A stretch of DNA of 64,000 nt from Histomonas meleagridis 2922-C6/04-290x (lineage: Eukaryota > Protista > Parabasalia), in assembly GCA_020184695.1 (NCBI GenBank), contig JAANOX010000130.1, forward strand, positions 124,001-188,000, given 5' to 3'. Below the pieces are notes generated by a model that saw only the letters and a list, made by a program, of their open reading frames with translations, was not told where the DNA came from and did no database searches. The position numbers and the translations under genes were made by a program. Shown here one piece after another: positions 27,785 through 40,510 of this stretch (the stretch's first letter is position 1; every line of letters starts with the position of its first letter).

Positions 27785-28783
27785 TTACTCTATAAAAATC
27801 CCAAGTGCGTCCAGCACTGCGAACCACGCGATTATAATTGGGATGAAGAAAATATTTGTCCAAAATATCATTGTCGAAGATGCTCCAGTACCAATGTTCG
27901 CATTATACGAAAGCAAATACGATGCAACAGCAGTCGGCAATGTCGTGATTACTATTGCCTGTCTCGACTGCCTTCCCGACAAACCCAAAGCTGACGAGAA
28001 TAGCCCGGTCAACAGTGGCATTATAATATGTCGTGAAACTGCGCAAATGATAAATTGAACCCACGAGCAACTCAACAATGAATGATCGGCTAAAAATGAT
28101 CCAACACAAAAACAAGAAAGCGCTAAAACACATTGACTCATAATGATAATTAATCGATCAATGAAATAACAAGTTGGGATCCCAACGCCTGCCCAAAAGA
28201 AGCCGATGATATAACCGATAATAATCGGATTTTTGATGATGCCAATAATTATGTTTAAGATGATTTTAAAGGAAAATTTTTCTTTTGGCTCGCCTTTTTT
28301 AACATGTTCTCGATTATTTGATAGATATGTATTAATGCCTGATAAAATAAGATATATGGGAGCCGCAATTAAATCATTGCACAATGTAATAACTGTAAGA
28401 ATTTGGTTTTCTGAGGCATCCCAAATGCTATCAAAAATTGGAATACCAATGATAACATAATTAACATATGTAGATGGAAGTGTGGTGGATAGATAATATG
28501 CAAGGCGATTTTCATTCTTGAATATAAGGACAAATAACAGAAATACATGTGTGGAAATAATTGCCAACGCACATGCGCCAAATGGCCTAAAATCAATCTT
28601 GGAGAGGTCCTGGTAAACTACATTATTGGCAATTAAGGGAACAAAACAAGGTTTGAATATAAATGTATTAATTCTATCAAAAGCATAACTTTTGATAATG
28701 CGAAACTTGCGGGCAATAAACCCAATGAAGATAAGTGTAATGACTGCGCATCCAACTGAAATAACGTTGGAGTAATCAACCAT
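27785..28783 (-). CDS. Auxin-efflux-carrier (AEC) family membrane transporter
   Basis: About 10 TM helices; N-terminal ILIGFIARKF, NYVIIGIPI, KNPIIIG, LPTAVASY motifs. Confidence 0.8.
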   Translation of the reverse strand: MVDYSNVISVGCAVITLIFIGFIARKFRIIKSYAFDRINTFIFKPCFVPLIANNVVYQDLSKIDFRPFGACALAIISTHVFLLFVLIFKNENRLAYYLSTTLPSTYVNYVIIGIPIFDSIWDASENQILTVITLCNDLIAAPIYLILSGINTYLSNNREHVKKGEPKEKFSFKIILNIIIGIIKNPIIIGYIIGFFWAGVGIPTCYFIDRLIIIMSQCVLALSCFCVGSFLADHSLLSCSWVQFIICAVSRHIIMPLLTGLFSSALGLSGRQSRQAIVITTLPTAVASYLLSYNANIGTGASSTMIFWTNIFFIPIIIAWFAVLDALGIFIE

Positions 28784-30125: not shown

Positions 30126-30631
30126 GTAAATTGCAAAAGTATTCTATAACAAAAGGTGTTATATAGAACTCACTGAGTGTTCTTTATGTTCCTTGTGTAG
30201 CTTCTCCAAGTTCTACAGCGGGAACTCTTCGAATTTCTTATTATTTCTCAATTTTTTTTTTATCATAAAATCTAATAAAGCAGTCCGGTTTCGGCATAAC
30301 TTCGAGCTGTGCCGCGTTTTCATATTCCACAACCAAGAATTGTGCAATTATTTCTTTGTGTTTGCAGTGTCCAAAATTGTGTATAACTCACCAACTCTTT
30401 GCCCCTCAGTCCAAAATAGTATAAAAATTCTTCCTTAATCAAACTTAAATTATTTCATCTGAAGCCACAAAAATTGAGGTGTAATTACCTTTAAAGTTTT
30501 GATGAATATTTCAAATGAATTTGGTTTCGTTGATAATATTGGTGATTGGATCAAACTTTAAACAAAAACAGACACTTTCACCAATTAAAGATAAATCCTT
30601 GTGAAGCTTGTTTTCGTCTGTACAAAGCAAA

Positions 30632-30652
30632 AAAAATCCGCGCTGCTGGAAT
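30632..30652 (-). repeat. 21-bp target-site duplication (tRNA-Tyr 3' end plus T-run), distal copy
   Basis: aaaaatccgcgctgctggaat is identical at 30632-30652 and 36509-36529. Confidence 0.92.
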
Positions 30653-33600
30653 TAAGTGTTTATTCACGTATGCTAATGCTCACTAAAGAGAGTTTGCTAT
30701 GTATAACGACGCGTCCGTCTGACCTTATGGCAGGTTGACCCTACTATTATTATCCATATTATTGCTGTTCTTCGGGGTGACCGTAACGGTTTTAACTGTT
30801 TGTAAAAGTCTTGACTGATGTCTAACTTTCATTTGTTTTCGTATTTCATCAATACTTTTTCTTTTAATTATTGAATTCATCTTCGTTAAGGTATCTTCTC
30901 TTTTCTTTGTTTTGTTCTTATCTAATATAAAAGATCTTTTCTTCTATTATAGATTTATGTTTATTACCTTTTTTGATTGTTTTGTTGGGTTCTGAAATAT
31001 TGTACTTATTTTCTGCTTCTTTTAATGTAAATTAAACATATTCTTTTCGTTCTTCTTCATTCGTATCTGAAGGTTCTGGAATTAGAGAAAATATCTGAGA
31101 AAGGTACTTCTTCTTATGGATTATAATTATCTTCATATATGACATTAAAATCTTCTTCTTCTCTTTCTAAATTAATGTTTATATTATTGTTATTATTTTT
31201 ATTTTTATTTTTGTCTTTCTCGTATACTAATATTCAGAATATTAACATTGATTCTCTCAGTGCTGCAATAACACATCTTCTAGATACTTAATGTAATAAC
31301 CTTTTATTTCCATTAAATAATCTTTTCGAATCTTTAGTAGTTTTATTCGGGATAATACCTAATGATGAAATAATAATTATATAAAGGTCGATTTCTATAT
31401 TAAGTTTACGTTTGCATAATTCAACATAATCTTTGTATATATCTTCTTTTTCTTTACTTCTAATAACTAAAGTTAATTCTGGATTGTCATCAAGATTCCA
31501 AATTGTGCCATACGGGGAATTGACTTCAACTAGAGTCAATTTATTGTTATTGATATACCATATGTCCTGTTTTAATGTTCCAATAGTTTTGTGATCTTTG
31601 TCTATTATTTTAGTATTCCTGTTGAATATTATATTATTACCTTTATAATCATTTTCTTTAATTCCTTTAATTATTTCTTCCACTATTGCATTATGTCTTT
31701 TAGTAGTTATATTTCAAATTTTGATGCAACCATTAATTCGATGCATTAATGAATCATTTTGATTTAAGTTACATCTGTTACATTTAGGATTTATATTTGG
31801 ATTATTCTTATTTAGGATTTTATTTGTTGGTAAATTATTGCATCTTGCTAGAATAACGAATTTAATAATATTATTATATGTTGATGCTCTAAAATTAAAT
31901 AAAAGAAGTTTGAATCCGCTGATTTATCTATTGAACAATAAGTATAAGCTTTAAATGATAATCTTTTAAGGATTGCTGAACGTTACTTTCGTATCATTTT
32001 ATTTATATATTTCGTGATATTTTATTCATTGATACATTCTTCTATTTCTTCTTCTTCTTTTTTTATTTGTTTTTAACTTGATAAATAATACAATTGTTTT
32101 CTTTTTAATTTGGCTTAAAACCTACTTCTAGATTATATAATGATTTTGTTGCTCTACATTGTGTACTATTTGTTTTTTTTTTCAGGATTTCGTATGGTTT
32201 TACCTTTCTACTCAGATGGAATTCCAAAATATAGTAAGTTTTCATCTACTTGTATTTTCCTATAATCTAATTCTTTGTACATTGTCATTCTAATAAAATT
32301 CCTAATGTTTATATCATTTGATAATAATAAACCTGTAAAGGTTATTAATTGTAATACATAATTTCTTTTTTCAAGTTTTTTATATCTAATAAATTCATCA
32401 AGTTTTTTTTATTCTTTAATAATACATAAGCCATTTAACATTTCAATATCTAATTGAGGAGTAATTATTCTTTAAATTGCATCTATTATTTGATTGATTT
32501 TTATAGGATAATTGATTATTCATATTATTTTCTGTTTAATTTCATTAATTTTGATTTGTTTTGAGTGTTTTTTACTTTTACGATTTATTGCTATTAGTGT
32601 TCCTAAATATTTAATATATTCCATTATTGGATGATTTGGTATTTCTTCATCATTAATAGTAAAACATTCATTTGGAATTGGTCTTTTGTTATCGAAATTT
32701 ATATAAGATAAAGTCCTATATTTTTGTAAAGCTATTCCAAGTTTAAATATTTTACAAAATTCCTCTACTGTTTTAAGCATATTTCAAGTATTGGTGATAA
32801 CGGACATCCTTGCCTGACACCTCCATCAATATTAATCCAATCCAATTATTCATTTTTCGATTCTATTCGTGTTTTAATATCTGTATATAAATCTTTAATT
32901 GATTTAACAAAATAATCTGGAAATCCTAATTGTTTTAGTGACCAAGTAATAAGTTTATGATATACTGAATCAAAAGCTTTAGCAAAATCTAATGCTGTGA
33001 TATTAATTGAATCTTTTGATCTGACTGATTGTGCGATTATTTCATTTATGTCAGTAATATGTTCTGTTATACCATTTATATTAGTTTTGATTAATATTCC
33101 TAATATTTTTCTATATTTTTACCTTCAAATGAATTAATTATTATTTCATTATCAATATTTTTTAAGGCATCTTTAATTGCTTTTTCTGAATAAGATATGA
33201 AATTATTTCTTGTATCTGATTCTTGTAGTTCTCTATATTTAATTATTTTCTCCATATGTGATATTATTTTAAATAATTGATTTTCTTGTATATATTTTCT
33301 TCTTAGATTAATATTTCGAATATTATCATTACTGTTTATCTTTTTGTTATTATTTGAACTCAACATATGATTTAATGGAATTTTTAAAGCTTTTCTGATT
33401 GTTTTCCTTAATATTGAATTAATCTTACATAAACAAACTTGAAATATTATAATCCATTCTTCTTCTGTTTTATCTTTAGTTTTACATTTTTTAATTGACG
33501 GTATAAATTTTATTTTCGAAAGCGTTACTTATTTGTTTGTGAATTTTATTTTTTATATTTTTATTCATCATTGGTAGTCTAATTATATGTGATTCCTGGA

Positions 33601-36508
33601 ATTCATTCACAAATATCCATTCCTTACATTTGTTAAGTAAAATTTCTCAATCATTAATTAATTGATTTCTTGTAACTATTTTGCCTATTGTTATTAAGTT
33701 ATTGTTATTATTTTTATTAATTTCATTATCTTGATTAGTTTGATTAATTTCTAATTTTTCTGTGTTATTTATATTAGCTTTTTTTAACCTTTTTTCTGAT
33801 TTTTTATTTTCATGCTTTTTTCTTTTTACTATATTATTATTATTTTTAGATTCGATTTCAATTTCTCCTTTTGTTAGCTTATTTAAATTCTCTTTTATTT
33901 CTTCTTCATTACTTTTCATTTTTTCTTCAATTACTTTGATTTTATCTTTATCAGGATAATTAAATACTCTTGATTTAAATTTTACTTGATGCATAGGGAT
34001 CTTAATATTTTTTTTCTTGAAATATTGTGCGCATGACTATTATGTGAAATTATGTTATTATATGTTTATGCTAATGCTTTTTTTACAAAAATCACATATA
34101 TATGCTTTATTTTTTCTTAATAATATTTCTGTTGTTGGATTTATATCATACCTTTGAATATAATTTAATACAAATGCCCACATTAATCCAAAATCTATTG
34201 TATTCTCATTATAATTGGAATGTCTTTTCACTATATAATTATTAAATGTGTTCTCACAATCTGTAATATTGTTACAATTATGTAAAGCACATGCATATAT
34301 AGTTTTCGATAAGTTGAAGGTTGTTTATTATCTTTGTCATATTGTTCCCAATAGGTTTTCTTTTTTAATATCAAACCTAAACAATCATAAATTATATTTC
34401 CATTTCGTCTTTTACCATTATGTGCCAAGTTTTCATGCCTTTTTTAGTCAGTGACCGCATTGAAAGCTTGATAATCACATTTGTGACAAATAAATGGACC
34501 AATGCCTGGAAATTTATGAAAGACTAACATTAAAAAAATGGTTGATATTTTGGTTTCATTCGTTTTATTCGAAAATGAATCTTTGTCAATATTATAATTT
34601 TTCTATTTATTATTGATTGTTAATTTTAATTCTGCAGTTGTTCGAACGTTTTTGAGATTTAAATAAGATTCTTCTGGTGTATGTATTATAATTTCATTGT
34701 TAATGTAAATGTTATTATTATTATTTGGTGGAATATTATCTTTATATTGATTATAGTTATCTATTTTTTAATTCGTTTGTTGTGATTCTTGTATATTTTG
34801 CTTTATTTCATCATTGTTAGCATTTTCTTTTTCATTGTTGTTTGAACCTTTATAATCTTCTTTATTTTTATCTTGAATAAAGTTATAATTTCCGTTCGAT
34901 ACTACTATATCTATATCTTTGTAAATTCAATTAAATTATAATGTTTAAATATTAATTGTTTCATCAGTAAATTTAATTTCTGGTTTTGGTATATTAATCT
35001 TATTTTTAAAGAATGAAAATTAGGTAATTGAATATTTGAGTCTTTATCGATTTGATTCATTCTGAAGGTTGGAATATTAATTGTTTCTTTTATAATTTTA
35101 TAATTTGGTATAATAATATTTTCTTCTACATTTTGAAGATTGAATTTCGATATTAGTACATTAACTTCGGATTTCTGTATAAGATATTTGAGTAATAAAA
35201 TATTGTTAATTTCTTCTTTAAAATTAAATTTTATAATCTTAACATATTGATCTTCTTGTATAAAGTTAATTTTGGGAATTGATAATTCTTCAATTTCTTT
35301 GATTGTTTCTATTTTTGATAATTGAATATTTTCTTTATATTTTTCGATATTAAATTTTGTTATTATCTATCATTTTCTTCTATTATTTTATTAAATTGCG
35401 GTATTATGTATTCTCATTAAAATATTTTAAAATTTGGGATTTTAATGTTCACATCTTGTGAGTTTATGTTAAAATTTGAGTTGTTGTTTGGGTGTCTTTC
35501 TTCATTATCTCCTATAATAGTTCCTAATGTTCGGAATTTATTTTTTTTTTGATTAAATAATAAGAAAACCATCAAGAAAACAGCATTTTCTAAGTATATT
35601 GTCATAGTATACATTTGAATTTGCATGATCAGTAAGGTGTAGTCCATAATCATCTGAATTGTTTAATTTTATTTTTCCACATAATGGACATATTATATTA
35701 GAAATTGTCCCGGGTTCCTCACTTTCTTCTATTTCATTATTATTAATGTCAAGTAGATTAACAATGTCTATATTTCTAAAATTCATGTATGGTGCTAATT
35801 CAATTCGTTTTCCTTTGTGAAATTTGTTTAAATGTATAAATAATTCTTCTTTATTGTCACTCTGTCAAGTACAAAAAGGAAACCATGGACAAAATAATAA
35901 TATTTTTTTTCATATTATTTTGTATAGCTATCGGTAAGTTATAGAACGTGAATCTTATTTCGTTTCTCATTAGATTTATTTCATCTGCTGTGAGTGTTCT
36001 AGATCTAAATGCTGCATCTTCAACTTCTGTTTCAGTACTGGTTTCTTCATCATCTGCATAATATTCCTGTTCATTTATTATCTTCATTGGATTTCTAATG
36101 TTATTTGTATTAGGGAGTACTATTGGTGCTGGTTGTGGTTGTGTTTGGAATTTTGGTACTCGATCAAATCGAAATCTGATTTCGGGATTTTGTTCATGAT
36201 CTGGACTCATATTCTCTCTGAATGGTTCTGGACTGGTGTACGTTGTTTCTGTGTTGCTTGTTGTGTCCTCCGTTGAACTTTCTTCTGCATCCGATCATGA
36301 TGGCCGGACTCAAAAAATGGTCTTTGTACTATAAAAAATATATCACTGTGTCTCCTGATGTTTCTTGTTTTGAGTTTTGTTTCATATCTCGGAGAGATAA
36401 TCTGATATGTTCCGAGATTCTCCGAAAATCATCGGAACTTATATGATTCTGCTCCTCTCAGGGCGCTCTAGTGGTGCACTTTTCCCCTTACTAAGTTGCT
36501 CAGGTGAT
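30653..36508 (-). mobile_element. Decayed RLE-type (R2/NeSL/R4-like) non-LTR retrotransposon inserted in a tRNA-Tyr gene
   Basis: Minus strand in order: C2H2 fingers (CPLCGK...HLTDH at about 35621-35690; CHKCDYQ...RHENLAH at about 34425-34500); RT motifs LDFAKAFDSV and GVRQGCPLSP (32790-33000) and KYLG; CCHC knuckle CNRC...HRINGC followed by RHNAIV; RLE motifs KQDIW, LVEVNSPY, IIISSLGIIP (31288-31683). Many stops and frameshifts. Confidence 0.92.
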
Positions 36509-36513
36509 AAAAA

Positions 36514-36595
36514 TCCGCGCTGCTGGAATCGAACCGGCGACCCTTTGATGACTACTTTTCTACAGTCAAATGCTCTACCACTGAGCTAAGAGCGG
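36514..36595 (-). tRNA. trnY-GTA: tRNA-Tyr(GTA) with a 10-nt intron (36550-36559); one mismatch each in the acceptor and T stems
   Basis: CCGCTCT TA GCTC AGTGGTA GAGC A TTTGA CTGTAG [AAAAGTAGTC] A TCAAA GGGTC GCCGG TTCGATT CCAGC AGCGCGG A, followed by TTTTT. Confidence 0.9.
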
Positions 36596-36941
36596 CGCTG
36601 AAAACTTAGAGGTATATATTATCATAATATTAAATTTGGAACGATTCGATTTTTTACAACGAGTCAAAATCGATATATATAAAAACTTACATGCATTCAA
36701 TAAAATTTACATGATGAGAAATTCAAAATTTGAATAAATAAATAACGTTTTTATTTTCATGACGAACAACCAATTCCAAAAAATAGCATTAGATCGATGC
36801 TATTTTTGGCACGGAGTTCTTACTTTGAATGACGTCGTTGTGTCGTGTATATTTATTTTCTAACATACAGCTTTTTTCGATATCAGAATTCAAAGAACTG
36901 TTCAAGATTCGCCTGATTTAATCGGACTATACACAAACGAT

Positions 36942-37546: not shown

Positions 37547-40510
37547 TTAAATGCTCCAAACATTAGTATATCCTAAAGTATCACCTGACACAAATACCTT
37601 TCCACAATGCACTGCTGTTGTTACCTTTCCTTGGTGCATATGTAATGATTGGAAATTTCCCGGTTGCATTCCTAATATTTTATCATTTCTCATACAAATC
37701 AATTTTTGTCCATCATACAATGTTACTGAAGGTCTATCTTCACAAGAGTCTATATATGTCACAGCTCTATCATCAATTGCTAACACTCCACCAAAATAAG
37801 GCAAAATCTGAGTAAACCGTCCGTTGCACGTTAAGCACACCTTCGTAAACGGCTCCTTTATCAATTCCACTTTTTGATCGCTTTGCACAAAAAACGCACA
37901 AGAGCTATCGTCGTTGGTCGCAGCGGGTGAAAGGTTTACAACGGCGCTCGTTTCAGTCATATACATAGGCACGAACATTCGGATGTCAACAAATGAAACG
38001 AGGCCCTCGGAAAAGCCTATAGCTGCTAAGGGCCGATCTGACCAAAAGCAAATGTCGGAAATGTCAGAAATTTGTCGATATTGAAGTGTAGATCGACTTT
38101 CAGGTGAACGAGTATCTATAAGTGATATACTTCTATCAGATGATGAACACAGGAATGTGGAGTTTCGATCAACTGGTCGTATGTTGGTGAAATGTATGTT
38201 ATTATTTTGTGGAGGAATGATAACTGTTTTCTTCTCGTTCTTAAACTCATAGCTTTCAATGGCGCCGTTCTCAAAGCCCAAGAGATAATGCGTGCTGGAA
38301 AGAATGGATGCTGATGAAATTTGGACGCGTAAGATATGAGATCGATATTGTGATGGTTGAACTAATGAGCCATTTTCATTGTAGATACTAAGCCAACGAA
38401 CTCTATTGGCTTCATTGATTGTGATACACATGGTGTTGTCATTGTTTGCAAAGATATATTTGATGGGAGATAAATCAGAATGAAAGGTGGCAACAAAGCG
38501 TGGTGTTAGTCTTGAGGCTATTGATTCTTTGGGTGGTACCTTTAATTTTATAGTCCCTTGTAGCTTTGGTCGTTCAGATTTACTGTTTACTTTTGTATTC
38601 TTTCTAGGGGCAGATATGTTTTGTCTCTTGAAGAAGAAGCAATAGTCATTACATTGTCTAATTTCAGGTGGTAAATTATTGATTAATTTTTGGACGTGAT
38701 AACGAATGATAGTATTTTGAGAAAACATATATTGACTTGCAAGTCTAGAAAGTAAATACATTGTATCATTTTCTAAGAAGCCATGTTCTAATAGATAATC
38801 CATTAAGATTATGGTGTGAATTAACACATTCACCGATGGGCGACCGTTTATGATTCCCTGGGGAATTGGCAAAATATTTGTAGCGGTTATTCGCTTGAAT
38901 TTTTTGATTTCATCCGGTTTGGCACTTTTGAGGTAACACATGATGATTGAAATGATCTCGAGGAAGTACTCATCATTATTATGGTTTAGAGTTGCGTAAA
39001 AAATACCCAAGAAAGAAGAGAACAGTTCAAATCCCCCCTCCTTTGCAAGGTTTTTAAATGAATTTGCGAAAACTTTGAAAATCCGAAAATTTGTCGATGC
39101 GAAAACAGATGAAAATTCTGTCGAAAAATTCTTAGCTGAATCAGGCGAAAGTCTTTTAAATGGGATAAAGAAACTTGGCAATATATCAGCTAAAACTAAT
39201 TTGGTTCCTTCATCACTATTATTACATAACTGTAGAATTGCTGGCTTTAAATAAAATGGTATATAATCGGAGAAATGTTGTGGAATTGATTCGATACTTT
39301 TAAGCATTTGTAATATTGATGATAATGCAGTTCGATGTAACATTGGAACTTGACAATGCAAAAAGCAAACAAAAAATGGAATAACTTTCGCAAGTTTTGT
39401 TTCATCTGAAAATAACTTTGAGAAATCGCTTAAAAAGGCAATTAATGGAAATACAACAGAATTAACATACGTGCTCTTTAATGCTTGGTCTTCAAGATAA
39501 TCAAATAAAAGAATTTTATACTCAACTGGACATTGTTGTTCTAATTGTTTGAACGTTTGGAAGGCGGTTTCGGTTTCGGTTTCAAACAAGTTTCGTTTTG
39601 ATGCACTTTCTTCGAACGTTAAAGATAACCGATGGAAAAATGTGTCGAACAAATTCATGATTTTTTTGGTGGATTCAAAACGTGAATTTGGATCAAGTTG
39701 TAACATGTCTTTAATGTATCCTATAATGGTTTTGTTATCAATGGGTTCAAGTGCTGCATCTAAATCAAAATTTCCATTTTTATACTGTATTAAAGTTTGG
39801 AAACTAAAAAGATGTTTACCATTTAAATAGATGAAGGCAAGTATACAACCAAGACTAAATAAATCGGAACAAATCTCATTAATATTTGTTTGATCTTTCG
39901 TAATACGTTCGGGTGCAATGTAACATCCAGAATATGAATCAGTAACAAAGTAATGATTAAAAATTTGTGGCATTGATGGGTCTACGGTTTTTGGTTTAAA
40001 TGGTGCAGGATCTGTGATATAAACTAGAAGATTTCGTTTCACAAAAATATTATTGGGTTTAAGATCTCCATGTGCAAAATTACATGAATGAAGACTATTG
40101 ACAGTCATAGCTATTTGAAAAAAAACAAACATTTTTTCTGCAGGATCTAATGAAGGCTGTTGAAATGCAGCAAATTGAGCTAGGCTTCTTTCTAGTCTCG
40201 GACGAATAAGGAGAGCCATATTATCTTGAACTTGAATTGTTGTAAAATTAACAATTCTTGAATTTTCAATTTGACGTTCGCTTAAATCTTTAAAATATTG
40301 TAAAGATCGTGGAACTTGTTCCAATCTCATCAAAGGTTCATGATATTGAAAAACTTTAACAATGAATTCTGTTGAATCATTAATTTTCTTACCCGTTAAT
40401 GTCATAAAAAATGTACCAAATCCTTCAAAAGCTTTTGTTGTATAACCTAATTTCTTTAATGGTGCAATATAAGAGTTGTTAAAGGATGTAATTGATAAAT
40501 CGCTACCCAT
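37547..40510 (-). CDS. VPS15: VPS15/PIK3R4-like protein (kinase, HEAT and WD40 domains)
   Basis: MGSDLS myristoylation start, HGDLKPNN, TDPAPFKP, CYIAPER, DLFSLGC; HEAT middle and C-terminal WD40. Confidence 0.85.
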   Translation of the reverse strand: MGSDLSITSFNNSYIAPLKKLGYTTKAFEGFGTFFMTLTGKKINDSTEFIVKVFQYHEPLMRLEQVPRSLQYFKDLSERQIENSRIVNFTTIQVQDNMALLIRPRLERSLAQFAAFQQPSLDPAEKMFVFFQIAMTVNSLHSCNFAHGDLKPNNIFVKRNLLVYITDPAPFKPKTVDPSMPQIFNHYFVTDSYSGCYIAPERITKDQTNINEICSDLFSLGCILAFIYLNGKHLFSFQTLIQYKNGNFDLDAALEPIDNKTIIGYIKDMLQLDPNSRFESTKKIMNLFDTFFHRLSLTFEESASKRNLFETETETAFQTFKQLEQQCPVEYKILLFDYLEDQALKSTYVNSVVFPLIAFLSDFSKLFSDETKLAKVIPFFVCFLHCQVPMLHRTALSSILQMLKSIESIPQHFSDYIPFYLKPAILQLCNNSDEGTKLVLADILPSFFIPFKRLSPDSAKNFSTEFSSVFASTNFRIFKVFANSFKNLAKEGGFELFSSFLGIFYATLNHNNDEYFLEIISIIMCYLKSAKPDEIKKFKRITATNILPIPQGIINGRPSVNVLIHTIILMDYLLEHGFLENDTMYLLSRLASQYMFSQNTIIRYHVQKLINNLPPEIRQCNDYCFFFKRQNISAPRKNTKVNSKSERPKLQGTIKLKVPPKESIASRLTPRFVATFHSDLSPIKYIFANNDNTMCITINEANRVRWLSIYNENGSLVQPSQYRSHILRVQISSASILSSTHYLLGFENGAIESYEFKNEKKTVIIPPQNNNIHFTNIRPVDRNSTFLCSSSDRSISLIDTRSPESRSTLQYRQISDISDICFWSDRPLAAIGFSEGLVSFVDIRMFVPMYMTETSAVVNLSPAATNDDSSCAFFVQSDQKVELIKEPFTKVCLTCNGRFTQILPYFGGVLAIDDRAVTYIDSCEDRPSVTLYDGQKLICMRNDKILGMQPGNFQSLHMHQGKVTTAVHCGKVFVSGDTLGYTNVWSI

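Follow-up and report, generated by a model that had tools for sequence, protein, structure and literature searches.

A decayed R2-like retrotransposon in Histomonas meleagridis, probably specific for tRNA-Tyr genes that its insertion leaves whole

Introduction

How might a retrotransposon insert within a tRNA gene and yet leave that gene complete? The question is raised by a locus in the parabasalid Histomonas meleagridis, a parasite of poultry, lying in a window of 64,000 nucleotides (the whole stretch of DNA analysed here), where a complete tRNA-Tyr gene is followed by a degraded element and then by a second copy of the last 16 nucleotides of the gene. In our reading, the stretch is very probably an old, inactivated, site-specific non-LTR retrotransposon of the kind that bears a restriction-like endonuclease (RLE; R2/NeSL-like), with tRNA-Tyr(GTA) as its sole target. 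Below, we consider the junctions in the window, the class of the encoded protein and the distribution of the family across the genome, weighing other explanations where the evidence touches on them.

The target gene and its junctions

The gene ahead of the element scores 51.3 bits over positions 1-71 of the Rfam tRNA model (RF00005; 36595..36514, minus strand), in agreement with ARAGORN. It carries the anticodon GUA and an intron of about 10 nt, and its sequence is the same in five of the six tRNA-Tyr genes of the genome, with a difference of 1 nt in the sixth. Behind it, the element opens at 36506 on the minus strand with CACCTGAGCAACTTAG... and closes at 30653 with ...AATAAACACTTA, without poly(A), joined to ATTCCAGCAGCGCGGA. 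This last piece is tRNA nt 58-73, comprising part of the T-loop, the 3' strand of the T-stem, the 3' strand of the acceptor and the discriminator; it flanks the element on both sides, with the upstream tRNA complete and followed by a T-run, of which the five T's at 36513-36509 are likely to end Pol III transcription of the rebuilt gene (Table 1).

The original prediction described most of this arrangement correctly: a complete tRNA-Tyr and TTTTT ahead of the element on the minus strand, an element end lacking poly(A) and joined to the tRNA 3' end, and an identical 21-mer, here an exact direct repeat, at 36509-36529 and 30632-30652. Its statement that the element directly follows TTTTT needs a small amendment, as AT (36508-36507) intervenes; the resulting trailer, TTTTTAT, is a shortened form of the T6-8..A..T6-8 leader of other copies. 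Its 21-bp duplication is less certain in extent, for the 21-mer includes five T's of the T8 run at 30636-30629, which two T-runs may have in common by coincidence, and the duplication is secure for 16 bp only (tRNA nt 58-73). Both readings rest on one locus, since the window alone offers an array end that passes into unique DNA. The window copy is present in DNA contigs from both sequenced strains. Neither an empty allele nor an orthologous site free of the element was seen, so that we infer the target duplication rather than observe it.

That the repeat arose by coincidence or by an error of long-read assembly is hardly credible. Across the 43-Mb genome there are 14 occurrences of its 16-nt tRNA part against 0 for a reversed-pattern control, and its repetition is therefore not due to chance; whilst the assembly is Nanopore-based, with homopolymer runs beside the repeat and read contigs that break at 30629, short-read-derived contigs from two samples show 0 differences to the window copy over many pieces.

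Table 1. Features of the element and of its target within the window
Feature	Position	Strand	Basis
Complete tRNA-Tyr(GTA) gene with short intron; putative rebuilt copy of the target	36514..36595	-	Rfam, ARAGORN
Duplicated target (tRNA nt 58-73), upstream copy, ATTCCAGCAGCGCGGA	36514..36529	-	
TTTTTAT trailer between tRNA-Tyr and element (TTTTT 36513-36509, AT 36508-36507)	36507..36513	-	
Decayed, internally deleted RLE (R2-like) non-LTR retrotransposon, probably tRNA-Tyr-specific, ~5.85 kb	30653..36506	-	
Conserved 5' untranslated leader, ~130 nt, opening with the 16 nt CACCTGAGCAACTTAG	36377..36506	-	
N-terminal remnant: two putative C2H2 zinc fingers, then IPxFN-type repeats	34747..36117	-	tblastn with C56 N-terminal ORF; motifs
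Middle-region remnant upstream of RT, with one further putative C2H2 finger	33109..34141	-	
Remnant of RT with motifs of fingers and palm, ...ITALDFAKAFDSV...	32771..33088	-	
RT thumb and linker remnant; 11 stops; ~91-bp deletion near 32381	31902..32783	-	
CCHC zinc knuckle CNRCNLNQNDSLMHRINGC, ahead of nuclease	31717..31923	-	zf-RVT weak; aligns to R2 CCHC region
Restriction-like (PD-(D/E)XK) endonuclease remnant	31291..31713	-	
3' untranslated end, ...AATAAACACTTA, no poly(A); ~81-bp deletion near 30801	30653..30800	-	
Orphan copy of tRNA nt 58-73, ATTCCAGCAGCGCGGA, downstream of element	30637..30652	-	
T8, putative original Pol III terminator of the target gene, then unique DNA	30629..30636	-	

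A dead copy of a longer element

The copy in the window is a dead, old relic. It is 75-86% identical to other copies and, aligned by tblastn to an intact relative, has about 40 stops and at least eight frame changes; RT residues 1-131 and 239-287 of that relative are missing from it, the second gap including YADD. Four segments of about 680, 165, 91 and 81 bp, kept by other copies that span those sites, have been lost, and the full-length unit is therefore about 6.9 kb rather than the predicted 5.8 kb, a figure that fits the deleted copy in the window (5.85 kb). The two largest deletions border the RT remnant at about 33091 (~680 bp) and 32786 (~165 bp), the latter having removed YADD. No open frame in this copy exceeds about 150 aa under the standard code, or about 330 aa under three alternative codes; the predicted order of zinc finger, RT, CCHC and RLE can be seen, but only as broken pieces. 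In the 5' leader, two hairpins have 2 compensatory pairs only, and the 130 nt fold no better than shuffled sequences do (z-score -1.5).

Membership of the RLE-bearing class

Better-preserved copies and relatives allow the protein to be classified. In the natural ORF (1033 aa) of the copy on contig C56, Pfam detects RVT_1 at 7.2e-34; it does so weakly in the RT remnant of the window copy. A PDB sequence search returned R2 proteins as the closest solved structures (1.7e-42), followed by L1 ORF2p; the R2 match extends across the CCHC region into the first part of the nuclease, a region that aligns to R2 residues 947-1080 and is weak when searched alone (E 0.003). CX2CX8HX4C, RHN, KPD, IEV and EKY are all present in the intact relative, the nuclease motifs of the window copy being RHN, KQD and VEV. 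Three motifs of C2H2 pattern were found by regular expression (Pfam zf-C2H2_2 weak, 0.07), and no Myb motif was detected in the N-terminal region. Pfam found no APE domain (Exo_endo_phos) in the three natural ORF pieces scanned. No copy of the family with a single uninterrupted full-length ORF was found. The RT type, the combination of CCHC and PD-(D/E)XK, the absence of an APE domain from the pieces scanned and the precise 3' junction in a repeated target are traits of the RLE-bearing non-LTR group (R2 in the wide sense, with R4, NeSL, HERO and CRE), and the predicted assignment to an R2-like, RLE-bearing class is confirmed.

Two other classes were considered and rejected: the strict R2 clade, with its 28S rDNA site, as all ends here lie in tRNA-Tyr instead, and the Pol III-tethered class (TRE5/TRE3, Ty1/Ty3), which uses an APE endonuclease or an integrase and enters at a fixed distance from the tRNA gene, as the junction here falls within the gene and the nuclease belongs to the RLE type. 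A search for an HDV-like ribozyme with Rfam models, which easily miss such ribozymes, found tRNA only (E up to 1).

Target specificity across the genome

In the attenuated-strain assembly of H. meleagridis (281 contigs, 43,133,364 bp) six tRNA-Tyr genes were found, all of them with element DNA downstream in the same orientation. Five are followed by 7-19 T-rich nt and then CACCTGAGCAACTTAG; at the sixth (C159), a 700-nt remnant of the element lies 345 nt downstream, also in the same orientation. The first 16 nt of the element, CACCTGAGCAACTTAG, have 11 genomic matches (at most one mismatch) as well as a variant on C251 with an A-run insertion, and these 12 5' ends all stand behind tRNA-Tyr 3' sequence. 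As for the other end, the occurrences of the 16-mer divide into the six genes and eight orphan fragments adjoining the element; every orphan is preceded by the element end ...AAATAAACAC(C/T)(A/T)A, and at each of the eight intact 3' ends ATTCCAGCAGCGCGG(A/G) follows, the junction being at position 57/58 of the T-loop, inside the B box. None of the 12 5' ends or eight intact 3' ends adjoins sequence other than tRNA-Tyr; the remnants on C1, C47, C90 and C193 are truncated, no longer retain a junction and are uninformative on specificity. A tRNA-Tyr-specific family had been proposed from the window alone, with multiple copies at one T-loop position named as its support, and is well borne out by ends that all adjoin tRNA-Tyr at the same nucleotide.

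Copies also form head-to-tail arrays, their units spaced by the 16-mer and 17-19 T-rich nt. This T-rich stretch, alike at different loci between the tRNA sequence and the element 5' end, may be owned by the element, owned by the target or added during integration. Independent insertion is supported by the low identity of neighbouring array units (81%) and of copies at separate loci (79-86%). The tRNA-proximal units on C61, C188 and C146 are mere 5' stubs of 300-460 nt, which are unusual for elements whose insertion relies on target-primed reverse transcription (TPRT) and need later deletions.

Could such a pattern arise with no target specificity, if an ancestral unit of tRNA-Tyr and element had spread by segmental duplication and unequal crossing-over and selection had kept the tRNA only? 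We consider this very improbable, given that the flanks of the six tRNA-Tyr genes are unrelated upstream of about -12, that array spacers contain the 16-mer and never a whole tRNA, that neighbouring units of one array are 19% different and that related families likewise lie behind other tRNAs. In its favour, duplication is put at 20% in the description of this genome (PMC8529796), C57, C1, C251 and C261 are composite duplicates, 94-98% identical, and 4-9 nt upstream are common to the six tRNAs (AGCG / TTAACAGCG).

The tRNA-Tyr-specific family is itself a branch within a wider group of related elements that stand behind different tRNAs in this genome. On C227, a sister family with 47% aa identity has a 3' end, ...AATAAAC, joined to AGTCCTGGGTGGTACA, which is nt 58-73 of a tRNA-Arg(ACG) gene 300 nt away; the sister thus ends at 57/58 of its tRNA, the same position as the Tyr family. 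Among 26 other related RT loci, at least 11 are preceded on the same strand by a listed tRNA, 1.4-6 kb upstream, against an expectation of 0.11 (P ~1e-18).

How the gene may be rebuilt

Under the reading we prefer, the bottom-strand nick and the TPRT primer site would lie at the 5' edge of the orphan fragment, TTCG/ATTCC, between tRNA nt 57 and 58. By homology with R2, from which we infer the cleavage chemistry and TPRT throughout, the protein would nick the antisense strand at this point, the 3' OH at the nick would prime reverse transcription of the poly(A)-less element RNA, and the sense strand would be cut at or past the tRNA 3' end. A sense cut in that position would duplicate at least 16 bp, allowing the upstream copy to complete the gene, and a target so rebuilt could be hit again, giving rise to head-to-tail arrays.

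An identical final structure would be expected if the 16-nt tRNA piece were instead a read-through 3' tail of the element RNA, inserted at the end or terminator of the tRNA gene with no staggered-cut duplication. R2 co-transcripts carry flanking 28S sequence; here, the 16-mer is perfect in seven of eight orphans while the adjoining 3' UTR varies, and the opening 16 nt of the element show equal conservation, such that its ends may be under functional constraint. The sister family on C227 nevertheless renders this improbable, since its end carries precisely the corresponding 16 nt, from position 58, of the different tRNA that it targets itself, and a fixed nick at 57/58 is simpler than two independent captures of one 16-nt span; moreover, in no copy does the 16-mer stand beside a non-tRNA site. 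The same observation makes it unlikely that the fragment is the element's own end, the case that the original prediction had itself named against its claim.

Staggered cleavage at 57/58 invites a bolder extension, which we offer tentatively and consider doubtful: that parabasalid R2-like elements radiated over many tRNAs with one geometry (a nick at 57/58, nt 58-73 duplicated), element and target becoming interdependent. The T-rich 5' leader of the element would act as Pol III terminator for the rebuilt tRNA, and the rebuilt tRNA as 5' processing signal of the element RNA, which RNase Z would cleave after nt 73, a step that would fill the role of the R2 ribozyme. If true, each tRNA-Tyr gene of the parasite would be a host-element chimera, and natural enzymes, each for another tRNA gene left intact, would constitute a ready panel of safe-harbour insertion enzymes.

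Comparison with known systems

By sequence, the best structural relatives are R2 proteins (R2Bm, R2Tg; PDB 8gh6, 8ibw, 9dou, 9nl2). R2 and the Histomonas family have the same order of N-terminal fingers (putative in Histomonas), RT, CCHC and PD-(D/E)XK nuclease, lack poly(A) and are strictly site-specific within a multicopy RNA gene. They differ in target (28S rDNA as opposed to tRNA) and in the Histomonas protein, which is about twice the length of R2 with a repeat-rich N-terminus; whilst R2 insertion inactivates the rDNA unit, the Histomonas insertion keeps its host gene whole. Rotifer R9, with its long duplication in 28S, and Utopia resemble the Histomonas family in their RLE and in a second cut well downstream of the first. 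Utopia, of the NeSL clade, is described as specific for U2 snRNA, with 20-bp duplications in reptiles and tandem insertions (PMC4640811). In neither does the duplication make the gene whole again, unlike that in Histomonas, which does so because the nick would lie 16 nt from the gene end.

Dictyostelium TRE5/TRE3 and yeast Ty1/Ty3 are tethered to Pol III factors and enter the DNA outside the gene, some distance away from it, whereas the Histomonas family appears to read DNA sequence inside the tRNA gene. For these elements tRNA genes are described as safe harbours in compact genomes (PMC5006619, PMC5911963), and for Dada DNA transposons tRNA and snRNA genes are described as safe target sites (PMC3706591, PMC8869645); Dada differs from the Histomonas family in its DDE transposase, cut-and-paste movement and lack of RT.

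Closest in target are elements surveyed by Kojima & Jurka. NeSL-1_TV of Trichomonas vaginalis is an RLE non-LTR retrotransposon reported to be specific for tRNA-Pro (Repbase; Kojima & Jurka 2015, PMC4640811), its phylogenetic position being left unresolved in that paper; by description alone, it resembles the Histomonas family in parabasalid host, RLE and tRNA gene target, that target being tRNA-Pro and not tRNA-Tyr. The planarian LIN15_SM (tRNA-Arg) and LIN25_SM (tRNA-Glu) of the R5/LIN lineage likewise have an RLE and lie within tRNA genes, their 3' junctions being precise; LIN15 is, in addition, flanked on both sides by overlapping tRNA sequence (PMC4640811, S6 Fig). Unlike the Histomonas family, however, their 3' junction is placed in the anticodon arm and their upstream copy is depicted as ending before the acceptor 3' strand, leaving the gene not rebuilt (PMC4640811, S6 Fig), whereas in Histomonas nt 58-73 are duplicated and the tRNA gene is complete. 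RLE elements specific for tRNA genes are already known, therefore, in NeSL-1_TV and LIN15/25 (PMC4640811), and the Histomonas family is a gene-preserving variant.

The Tyr family and its target site

The window copy belongs to the Tyr family, R2-like non-LTR retrotransposons with a restriction-like endonuclease (RLE) that are specific for tRNA-Tyr(GTA). The original prediction described a complete tRNA-Tyr with its TTTTT followed directly, on the minus strand, by an element whose far end lacks poly(A) and is joined to the tRNA 3' end again; Rfam and ARAGORN confirmed the gene, and the junction at 30653 bore out the rest. An exact 21-mer is repeated at 36509-36529 and 30632-30652. In the Rfam alignment the T-loop of this tRNA reads UUCGAUU and the repeat begins at A58, so nt 57 and 58 flank the junction, which falls within the B box. 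The proposed T-loop position (TTCG/ATT) therefore stands, the nick itself being suggested by analogy with R2.

Features of the Tyr family, its tRNA-Arg sister and related loci in Histomonas meleagridis (plain numbers are window positions; C, contigs of the same genome, G000; L065, a fetched piece of C227; a slash marks the junction)
Feature	Position	Strand	Basis or remark
Complete tRNA-Tyr, anticodon GUA, short intron	36595-36514	minus	Rfam tRNA 51.3 bits, model 1-71; ARAGORN
Trailer TTTTT + AT, then element 5' end CACCTGAGCAACTTAG...	element from 36506	minus	sequence read
Element 3' end ...AATAAACACTTA, without poly(A)	30653	minus	sequence read
Orphan 16-mer ATTCCAGCAGCGCGGA, then T8, then unique DNA	30652-30637	minus	sequence read
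Kinase-WD40 host gene, one side of element	37547-40510		
Membrane transporter host gene, other side of element	27785-28783		
Sister junction ...GCTAATAAAC/AGTCCTGGGTGGTACA + T's	L065:2400-3140 (C227:116813-117553)		AGTCCTGGGTGGTACA = nt 58-73 of tRNA-Arg(ACG)
Complete tRNA-Arg(ACG), ...GGTTCG/AGTCCTGGGTGGTACA	L065:2840-2912, 300 nt downstream of junction		ARAGORN
Eleven tRNA-linked RT loci	C153:274478, C11:479675, C61:356000, C29:225310, C269:4044, C87:138607, C79:133281, C62:102179, C32:230838, C88:41971, C245:84603		

A search of the genome assembly (281 contigs, 43,133,364 bp) found six tRNA-Tyr genes, five identical and one with a single substitution. Five are followed by 7-19 T-rich nt and then an element 5' end. 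The sixth, on contig C159, first looked unoccupied and was rejected as an empty site, as 345 nt of other sequence give way to a like-oriented 700-nt remnant from the part of the element that encodes the N-terminus. Multiple copies at one T-loop position, as anticipated, are thus what the genome holds: all six genes have element DNA downstream, and all readable ends lie at tRNA-Tyr. The last 16 nt of the tRNA occur 14 times, six within genes and eight as orphans outside a complete gene, against no occurrence of a control pattern, and each orphan whose sequence was read is preceded by the 3' end of an element (...AAATAAACACCAA; for the window copy, ...ACACTTA). Conversely, the first 16 nt of the element have 11 pattern matches, and C251 adds a variant into which an A-run is inserted; in every case the tRNA 16-mer lies 7-19 nt upstream. 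No Tyr-family 5' or 3' end abutting anything but tRNA-Tyr sequence was found in the genome; truncated remnants on C1, C47, C90 and C193 have lost their junctions. In metagenome scans, neither the 5' junction nor the 3' 22-mer of tRNA-Tyr had a single match.

Two rival explanations for this pattern can be weighed here. Firstly, there is a negligible chance that it is an artefact, given the control count and the sequencing reads, where many pieces of the window copy recur without a difference in DNA contigs from both strains. Neither an empty allele nor an informative joint was seen in the reads, and two 2023 runs, possibly RNA, gave a few low-depth contigs of the 3' part. Secondly, copies might have spread by segmental duplication only, which is very improbable: the upstream flanks of the six genes have only 4-9 nt in common and are unrelated beyond, and neighbouring units of the array on C160 are just 81% identical. 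As copies diverge by 14-21% (two young clusters are 94-98% identical), the unrelated flanks indicate that diverged lineages inserted separately at one type of site and that the copies are not a single duplicated block.

The sequence immediately 5' of all six genes is AGCG, or TTAACAGCG at three loci (e.g. window 36596-36604), with unrelated DNA farther out; tRNA-Tyr genes may have a short promoter or leader element here.

Duplication, terminator and mechanism

Of the 21-bp duplication originally proposed, 16 bp (nt 58-73) are secure; the extra five T's come from two T-runs, and the window trailer is only TTTTTAT. In the distal flank of the window copy T8 directly follows the tRNA end, as it does in the C159 trailer; because C159 is itself occupied by a remnant, the window flank is the only clean native trailer. 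A bipartite motif, (A)TGGATTTTTTATTTTTT(T) or a variant of it, recurs in proximal trailers and array spacers at different loci, and we lean towards reading this motif as the element's own 5' leader. The rebuilt tRNA would then receive its terminator from the element, and the duplication would be exactly nt 58-73. Alternatively, with somewhat less than an even chance, the tRNA genes natively carry double T-runs and the second cut falls 16-19 nt past the gene.

The sequence itself shows where and in which orientation the elements lie, the position of the junction, the duplication of 16 nt, an upstream gene that is intact and has a terminator, and the arrays. By analogy with R2, insertion would involve an antisense-strand nick at 57/58, target-primed reverse transcription (TPRT) from that nick, and another cut at the end of the gene or beyond it.

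A sister family at tRNA-Arg and the wider superfamily

A family on C227 is 47% identical to the Tyr family in amino acids over the RT and RLE. When its junction is aligned with tRNA-Arg(ACG), identity begins exactly at nt 58; some 40 nt past both tRNA ends are also alike (T7 S A T6 GATGCRAAGT), the T7(G/C)AT6 resembling the bipartite motif of the Tyr family. On these alignments the two families stop at one and the same T-loop position, in two different tRNAs, and carry the 16 nt of their respective targets, as a fixed nick at 57/58 predicts. The same comparison bears on whether the 16-mer could be an element-borne tail, the distal fragment being a constant part of the element's own end. This is improbable, since the C227 family ends with 16 nt of tRNA-Arg, its own and different target.

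A protein search of the genome revealed ~26 further RT loci at 35-53% identity, 11 of which have a tRNA 1.4-6 kb upstream on the same strand, against 0.11 expected (Poisson P ~1e-18; the count rests on 63 tRNAs listed by an Rfam search). Linkage to tRNA genes, of several tRNA species, appears to be a feature of the whole superfamily.

Decay, arrays and rearrangements

All comparisons of copies were made with natural sequences rather than a consensus or repaired one. The full unit of the Tyr family is ~6.9 kb, and the window copy is dead: no frame stays open beyond ~150 codons in the standard code or ~330 in three alternative codes (tables 6, 4 and 10), none of which gives a long ORF, so an alternative code was rejected as the cause and the copy regarded as broken. 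Relative to the natural ORFs of the C56 copy it has ~40 stops and at least 8 frame changes, and is without RT residues 1-131 and 239-287, the latter including YADD. Four segments of ~680, 165, 91 and 81 bp are absent from it and kept in other copies that span those sites; as they are coding there, YADD included, their absence reflects deletion, and introns were rejected.

Units of the C160 array become less intact with distance from the upstream end: the first shares 97% identity with the longest-ORF copy, C56; the next is internally deleted; and the last is a 130-nt stub. Such a gradient fits the arrival of new units at the rebuilt tRNA, and is suggestive only. A low-complexity repeat with the translation LDLSVVLAD... 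(C160:4744-5109) abuts the last stub.

Three tRNA-Tyr genes carry only a 300-460-nt 5' stub followed by unrelated DNA (C61:190824-191447, C188:1020-1639, C146:87976-88288), whereas TPRT elements are not usually truncated from the 3' side. Some copies carry an 85-nt stretch of the 5' region (element nt ~333-422) two to three times in tandem, at C56:4505-4816, C188:1020-1181 and C61:191283-191447. The break-off of several remnants at element nt ~418-427 suggests that this spot is fragile or prone to recombination. A repeated ORF (...LEDWYNAVDDCLKLSEIIPGNYEYTTAT...) without Pfam match occurs at C57:13240-14790 (L030:1736-3286), C1:25456-26973, C251:3510-4883 and C261:218980-217586, where it meets the element within the 5' region near nt 350 (C57, C251, C261) or in the 3' UTR (C1); this ORF is a recombination partner of the Tyr element or else a second mobile element nested within it.

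Protein and distant relatives

No copy has an uninterrupted full-length ORF, the C56 frame being broken between 1262 and 1327. The 1033-aa natural ORF of C56 matches RVT_1 (7e-34), and its best solved relatives are R2 proteins (9nl2 at 1.7e-42, 9dou, 8gh6), ahead of L1 ORF2p. The C-terminal portion of this ORF can be aligned with the CCHC and nuclease region of R2, although the match is weak in a search with that portion by itself (E 0.003), and it carries the motifs CX2CX8HX4C, RHN, KPD, IEV and EKY. Three C2H2-pattern fingers and a series of IPxFN repeats are encoded by ORF pieces farther upstream. The latter comprise at least 10 degenerate repeats around N-I-x-I-P-x-F-N, without family match, at residues ~240-480 (C56:4829-6604; L029:1601-3376); flanked by a zinc-finger cluster on either side, they might take part in recognising the target. 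For a ribozyme or for structured 5' or 3' ends there was no support: an Rfam search found only the tRNA, and an alignment fold gave 2 compensatory pairs, with fold z-scores of -1.5 and -0.2.

A word search returned 1258 relatives, the nearest being metagenome proteins at 30-40% identity and one at 71%. RT ORFs lie head-to-tail on several metagenome contigs (e.g. L069:83-11563 and L070:464-12695, 30-35% identity, the latter with a period of ~6.6 kb); no tRNA piece was recognisable in the spacers of these two, and no full tRNA was found on nine contigs of the relatives at 30-40% identity. On one metagenome contig, carrying a relative at 35% identity, a 58-nt tRNA-Ile(GAT)-like 5' part lies 516 nt past the stop of the RT ORF and stops inside the T-loop (L067:6215-6275; GGTTCGAG/...), and may represent a T-loop insertion without a rebuilt gene.

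Significance and comparison with known elements

The published H. meleagridis genome counts 23-32 retroelement pieces totalling merely 2.5-5 kb (PMC8529796), and the Tyr family was therefore not recognised there; nor did we find any paper on such elements in Histomonas. A repeat class has been missed: R2-like elements of 7 kb that have diversified and that are apparently all linked to tRNA genes. The Tyr family indicates that a site-specific retrotransposon can saturate all copies of an essential tRNA gene family without destroying them, because the element's duplication rebuilds the gene. Together, the Tyr and Arg families, at the same T-loop position of different tRNAs, form a natural experiment on specificity change in R2-type enzymes. 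R2 proteins are under development for targeted gene insertion, and natural enzymes reading different tRNA genes are therefore of practical interest.

That RLE elements can be specific for tRNA genes is a principle known since 2015, when NeSL-1_TV of Trichomonas vaginalis was reported to be specific for tRNA-Pro, and the planarian elements LIN15_SM and LIN25_SM to target tRNA-Arg and tRNA-Glu (Kojima & Jurka 2015, PMC4640811). What is new is the Tyr specificity, the occupation of every target copy and the gene-preserving geometry; in LIN15, by contrast, the junctions lie in the anticodon arm and the upstream copy ends before the acceptor strand (PMC4640811, S6 Fig).
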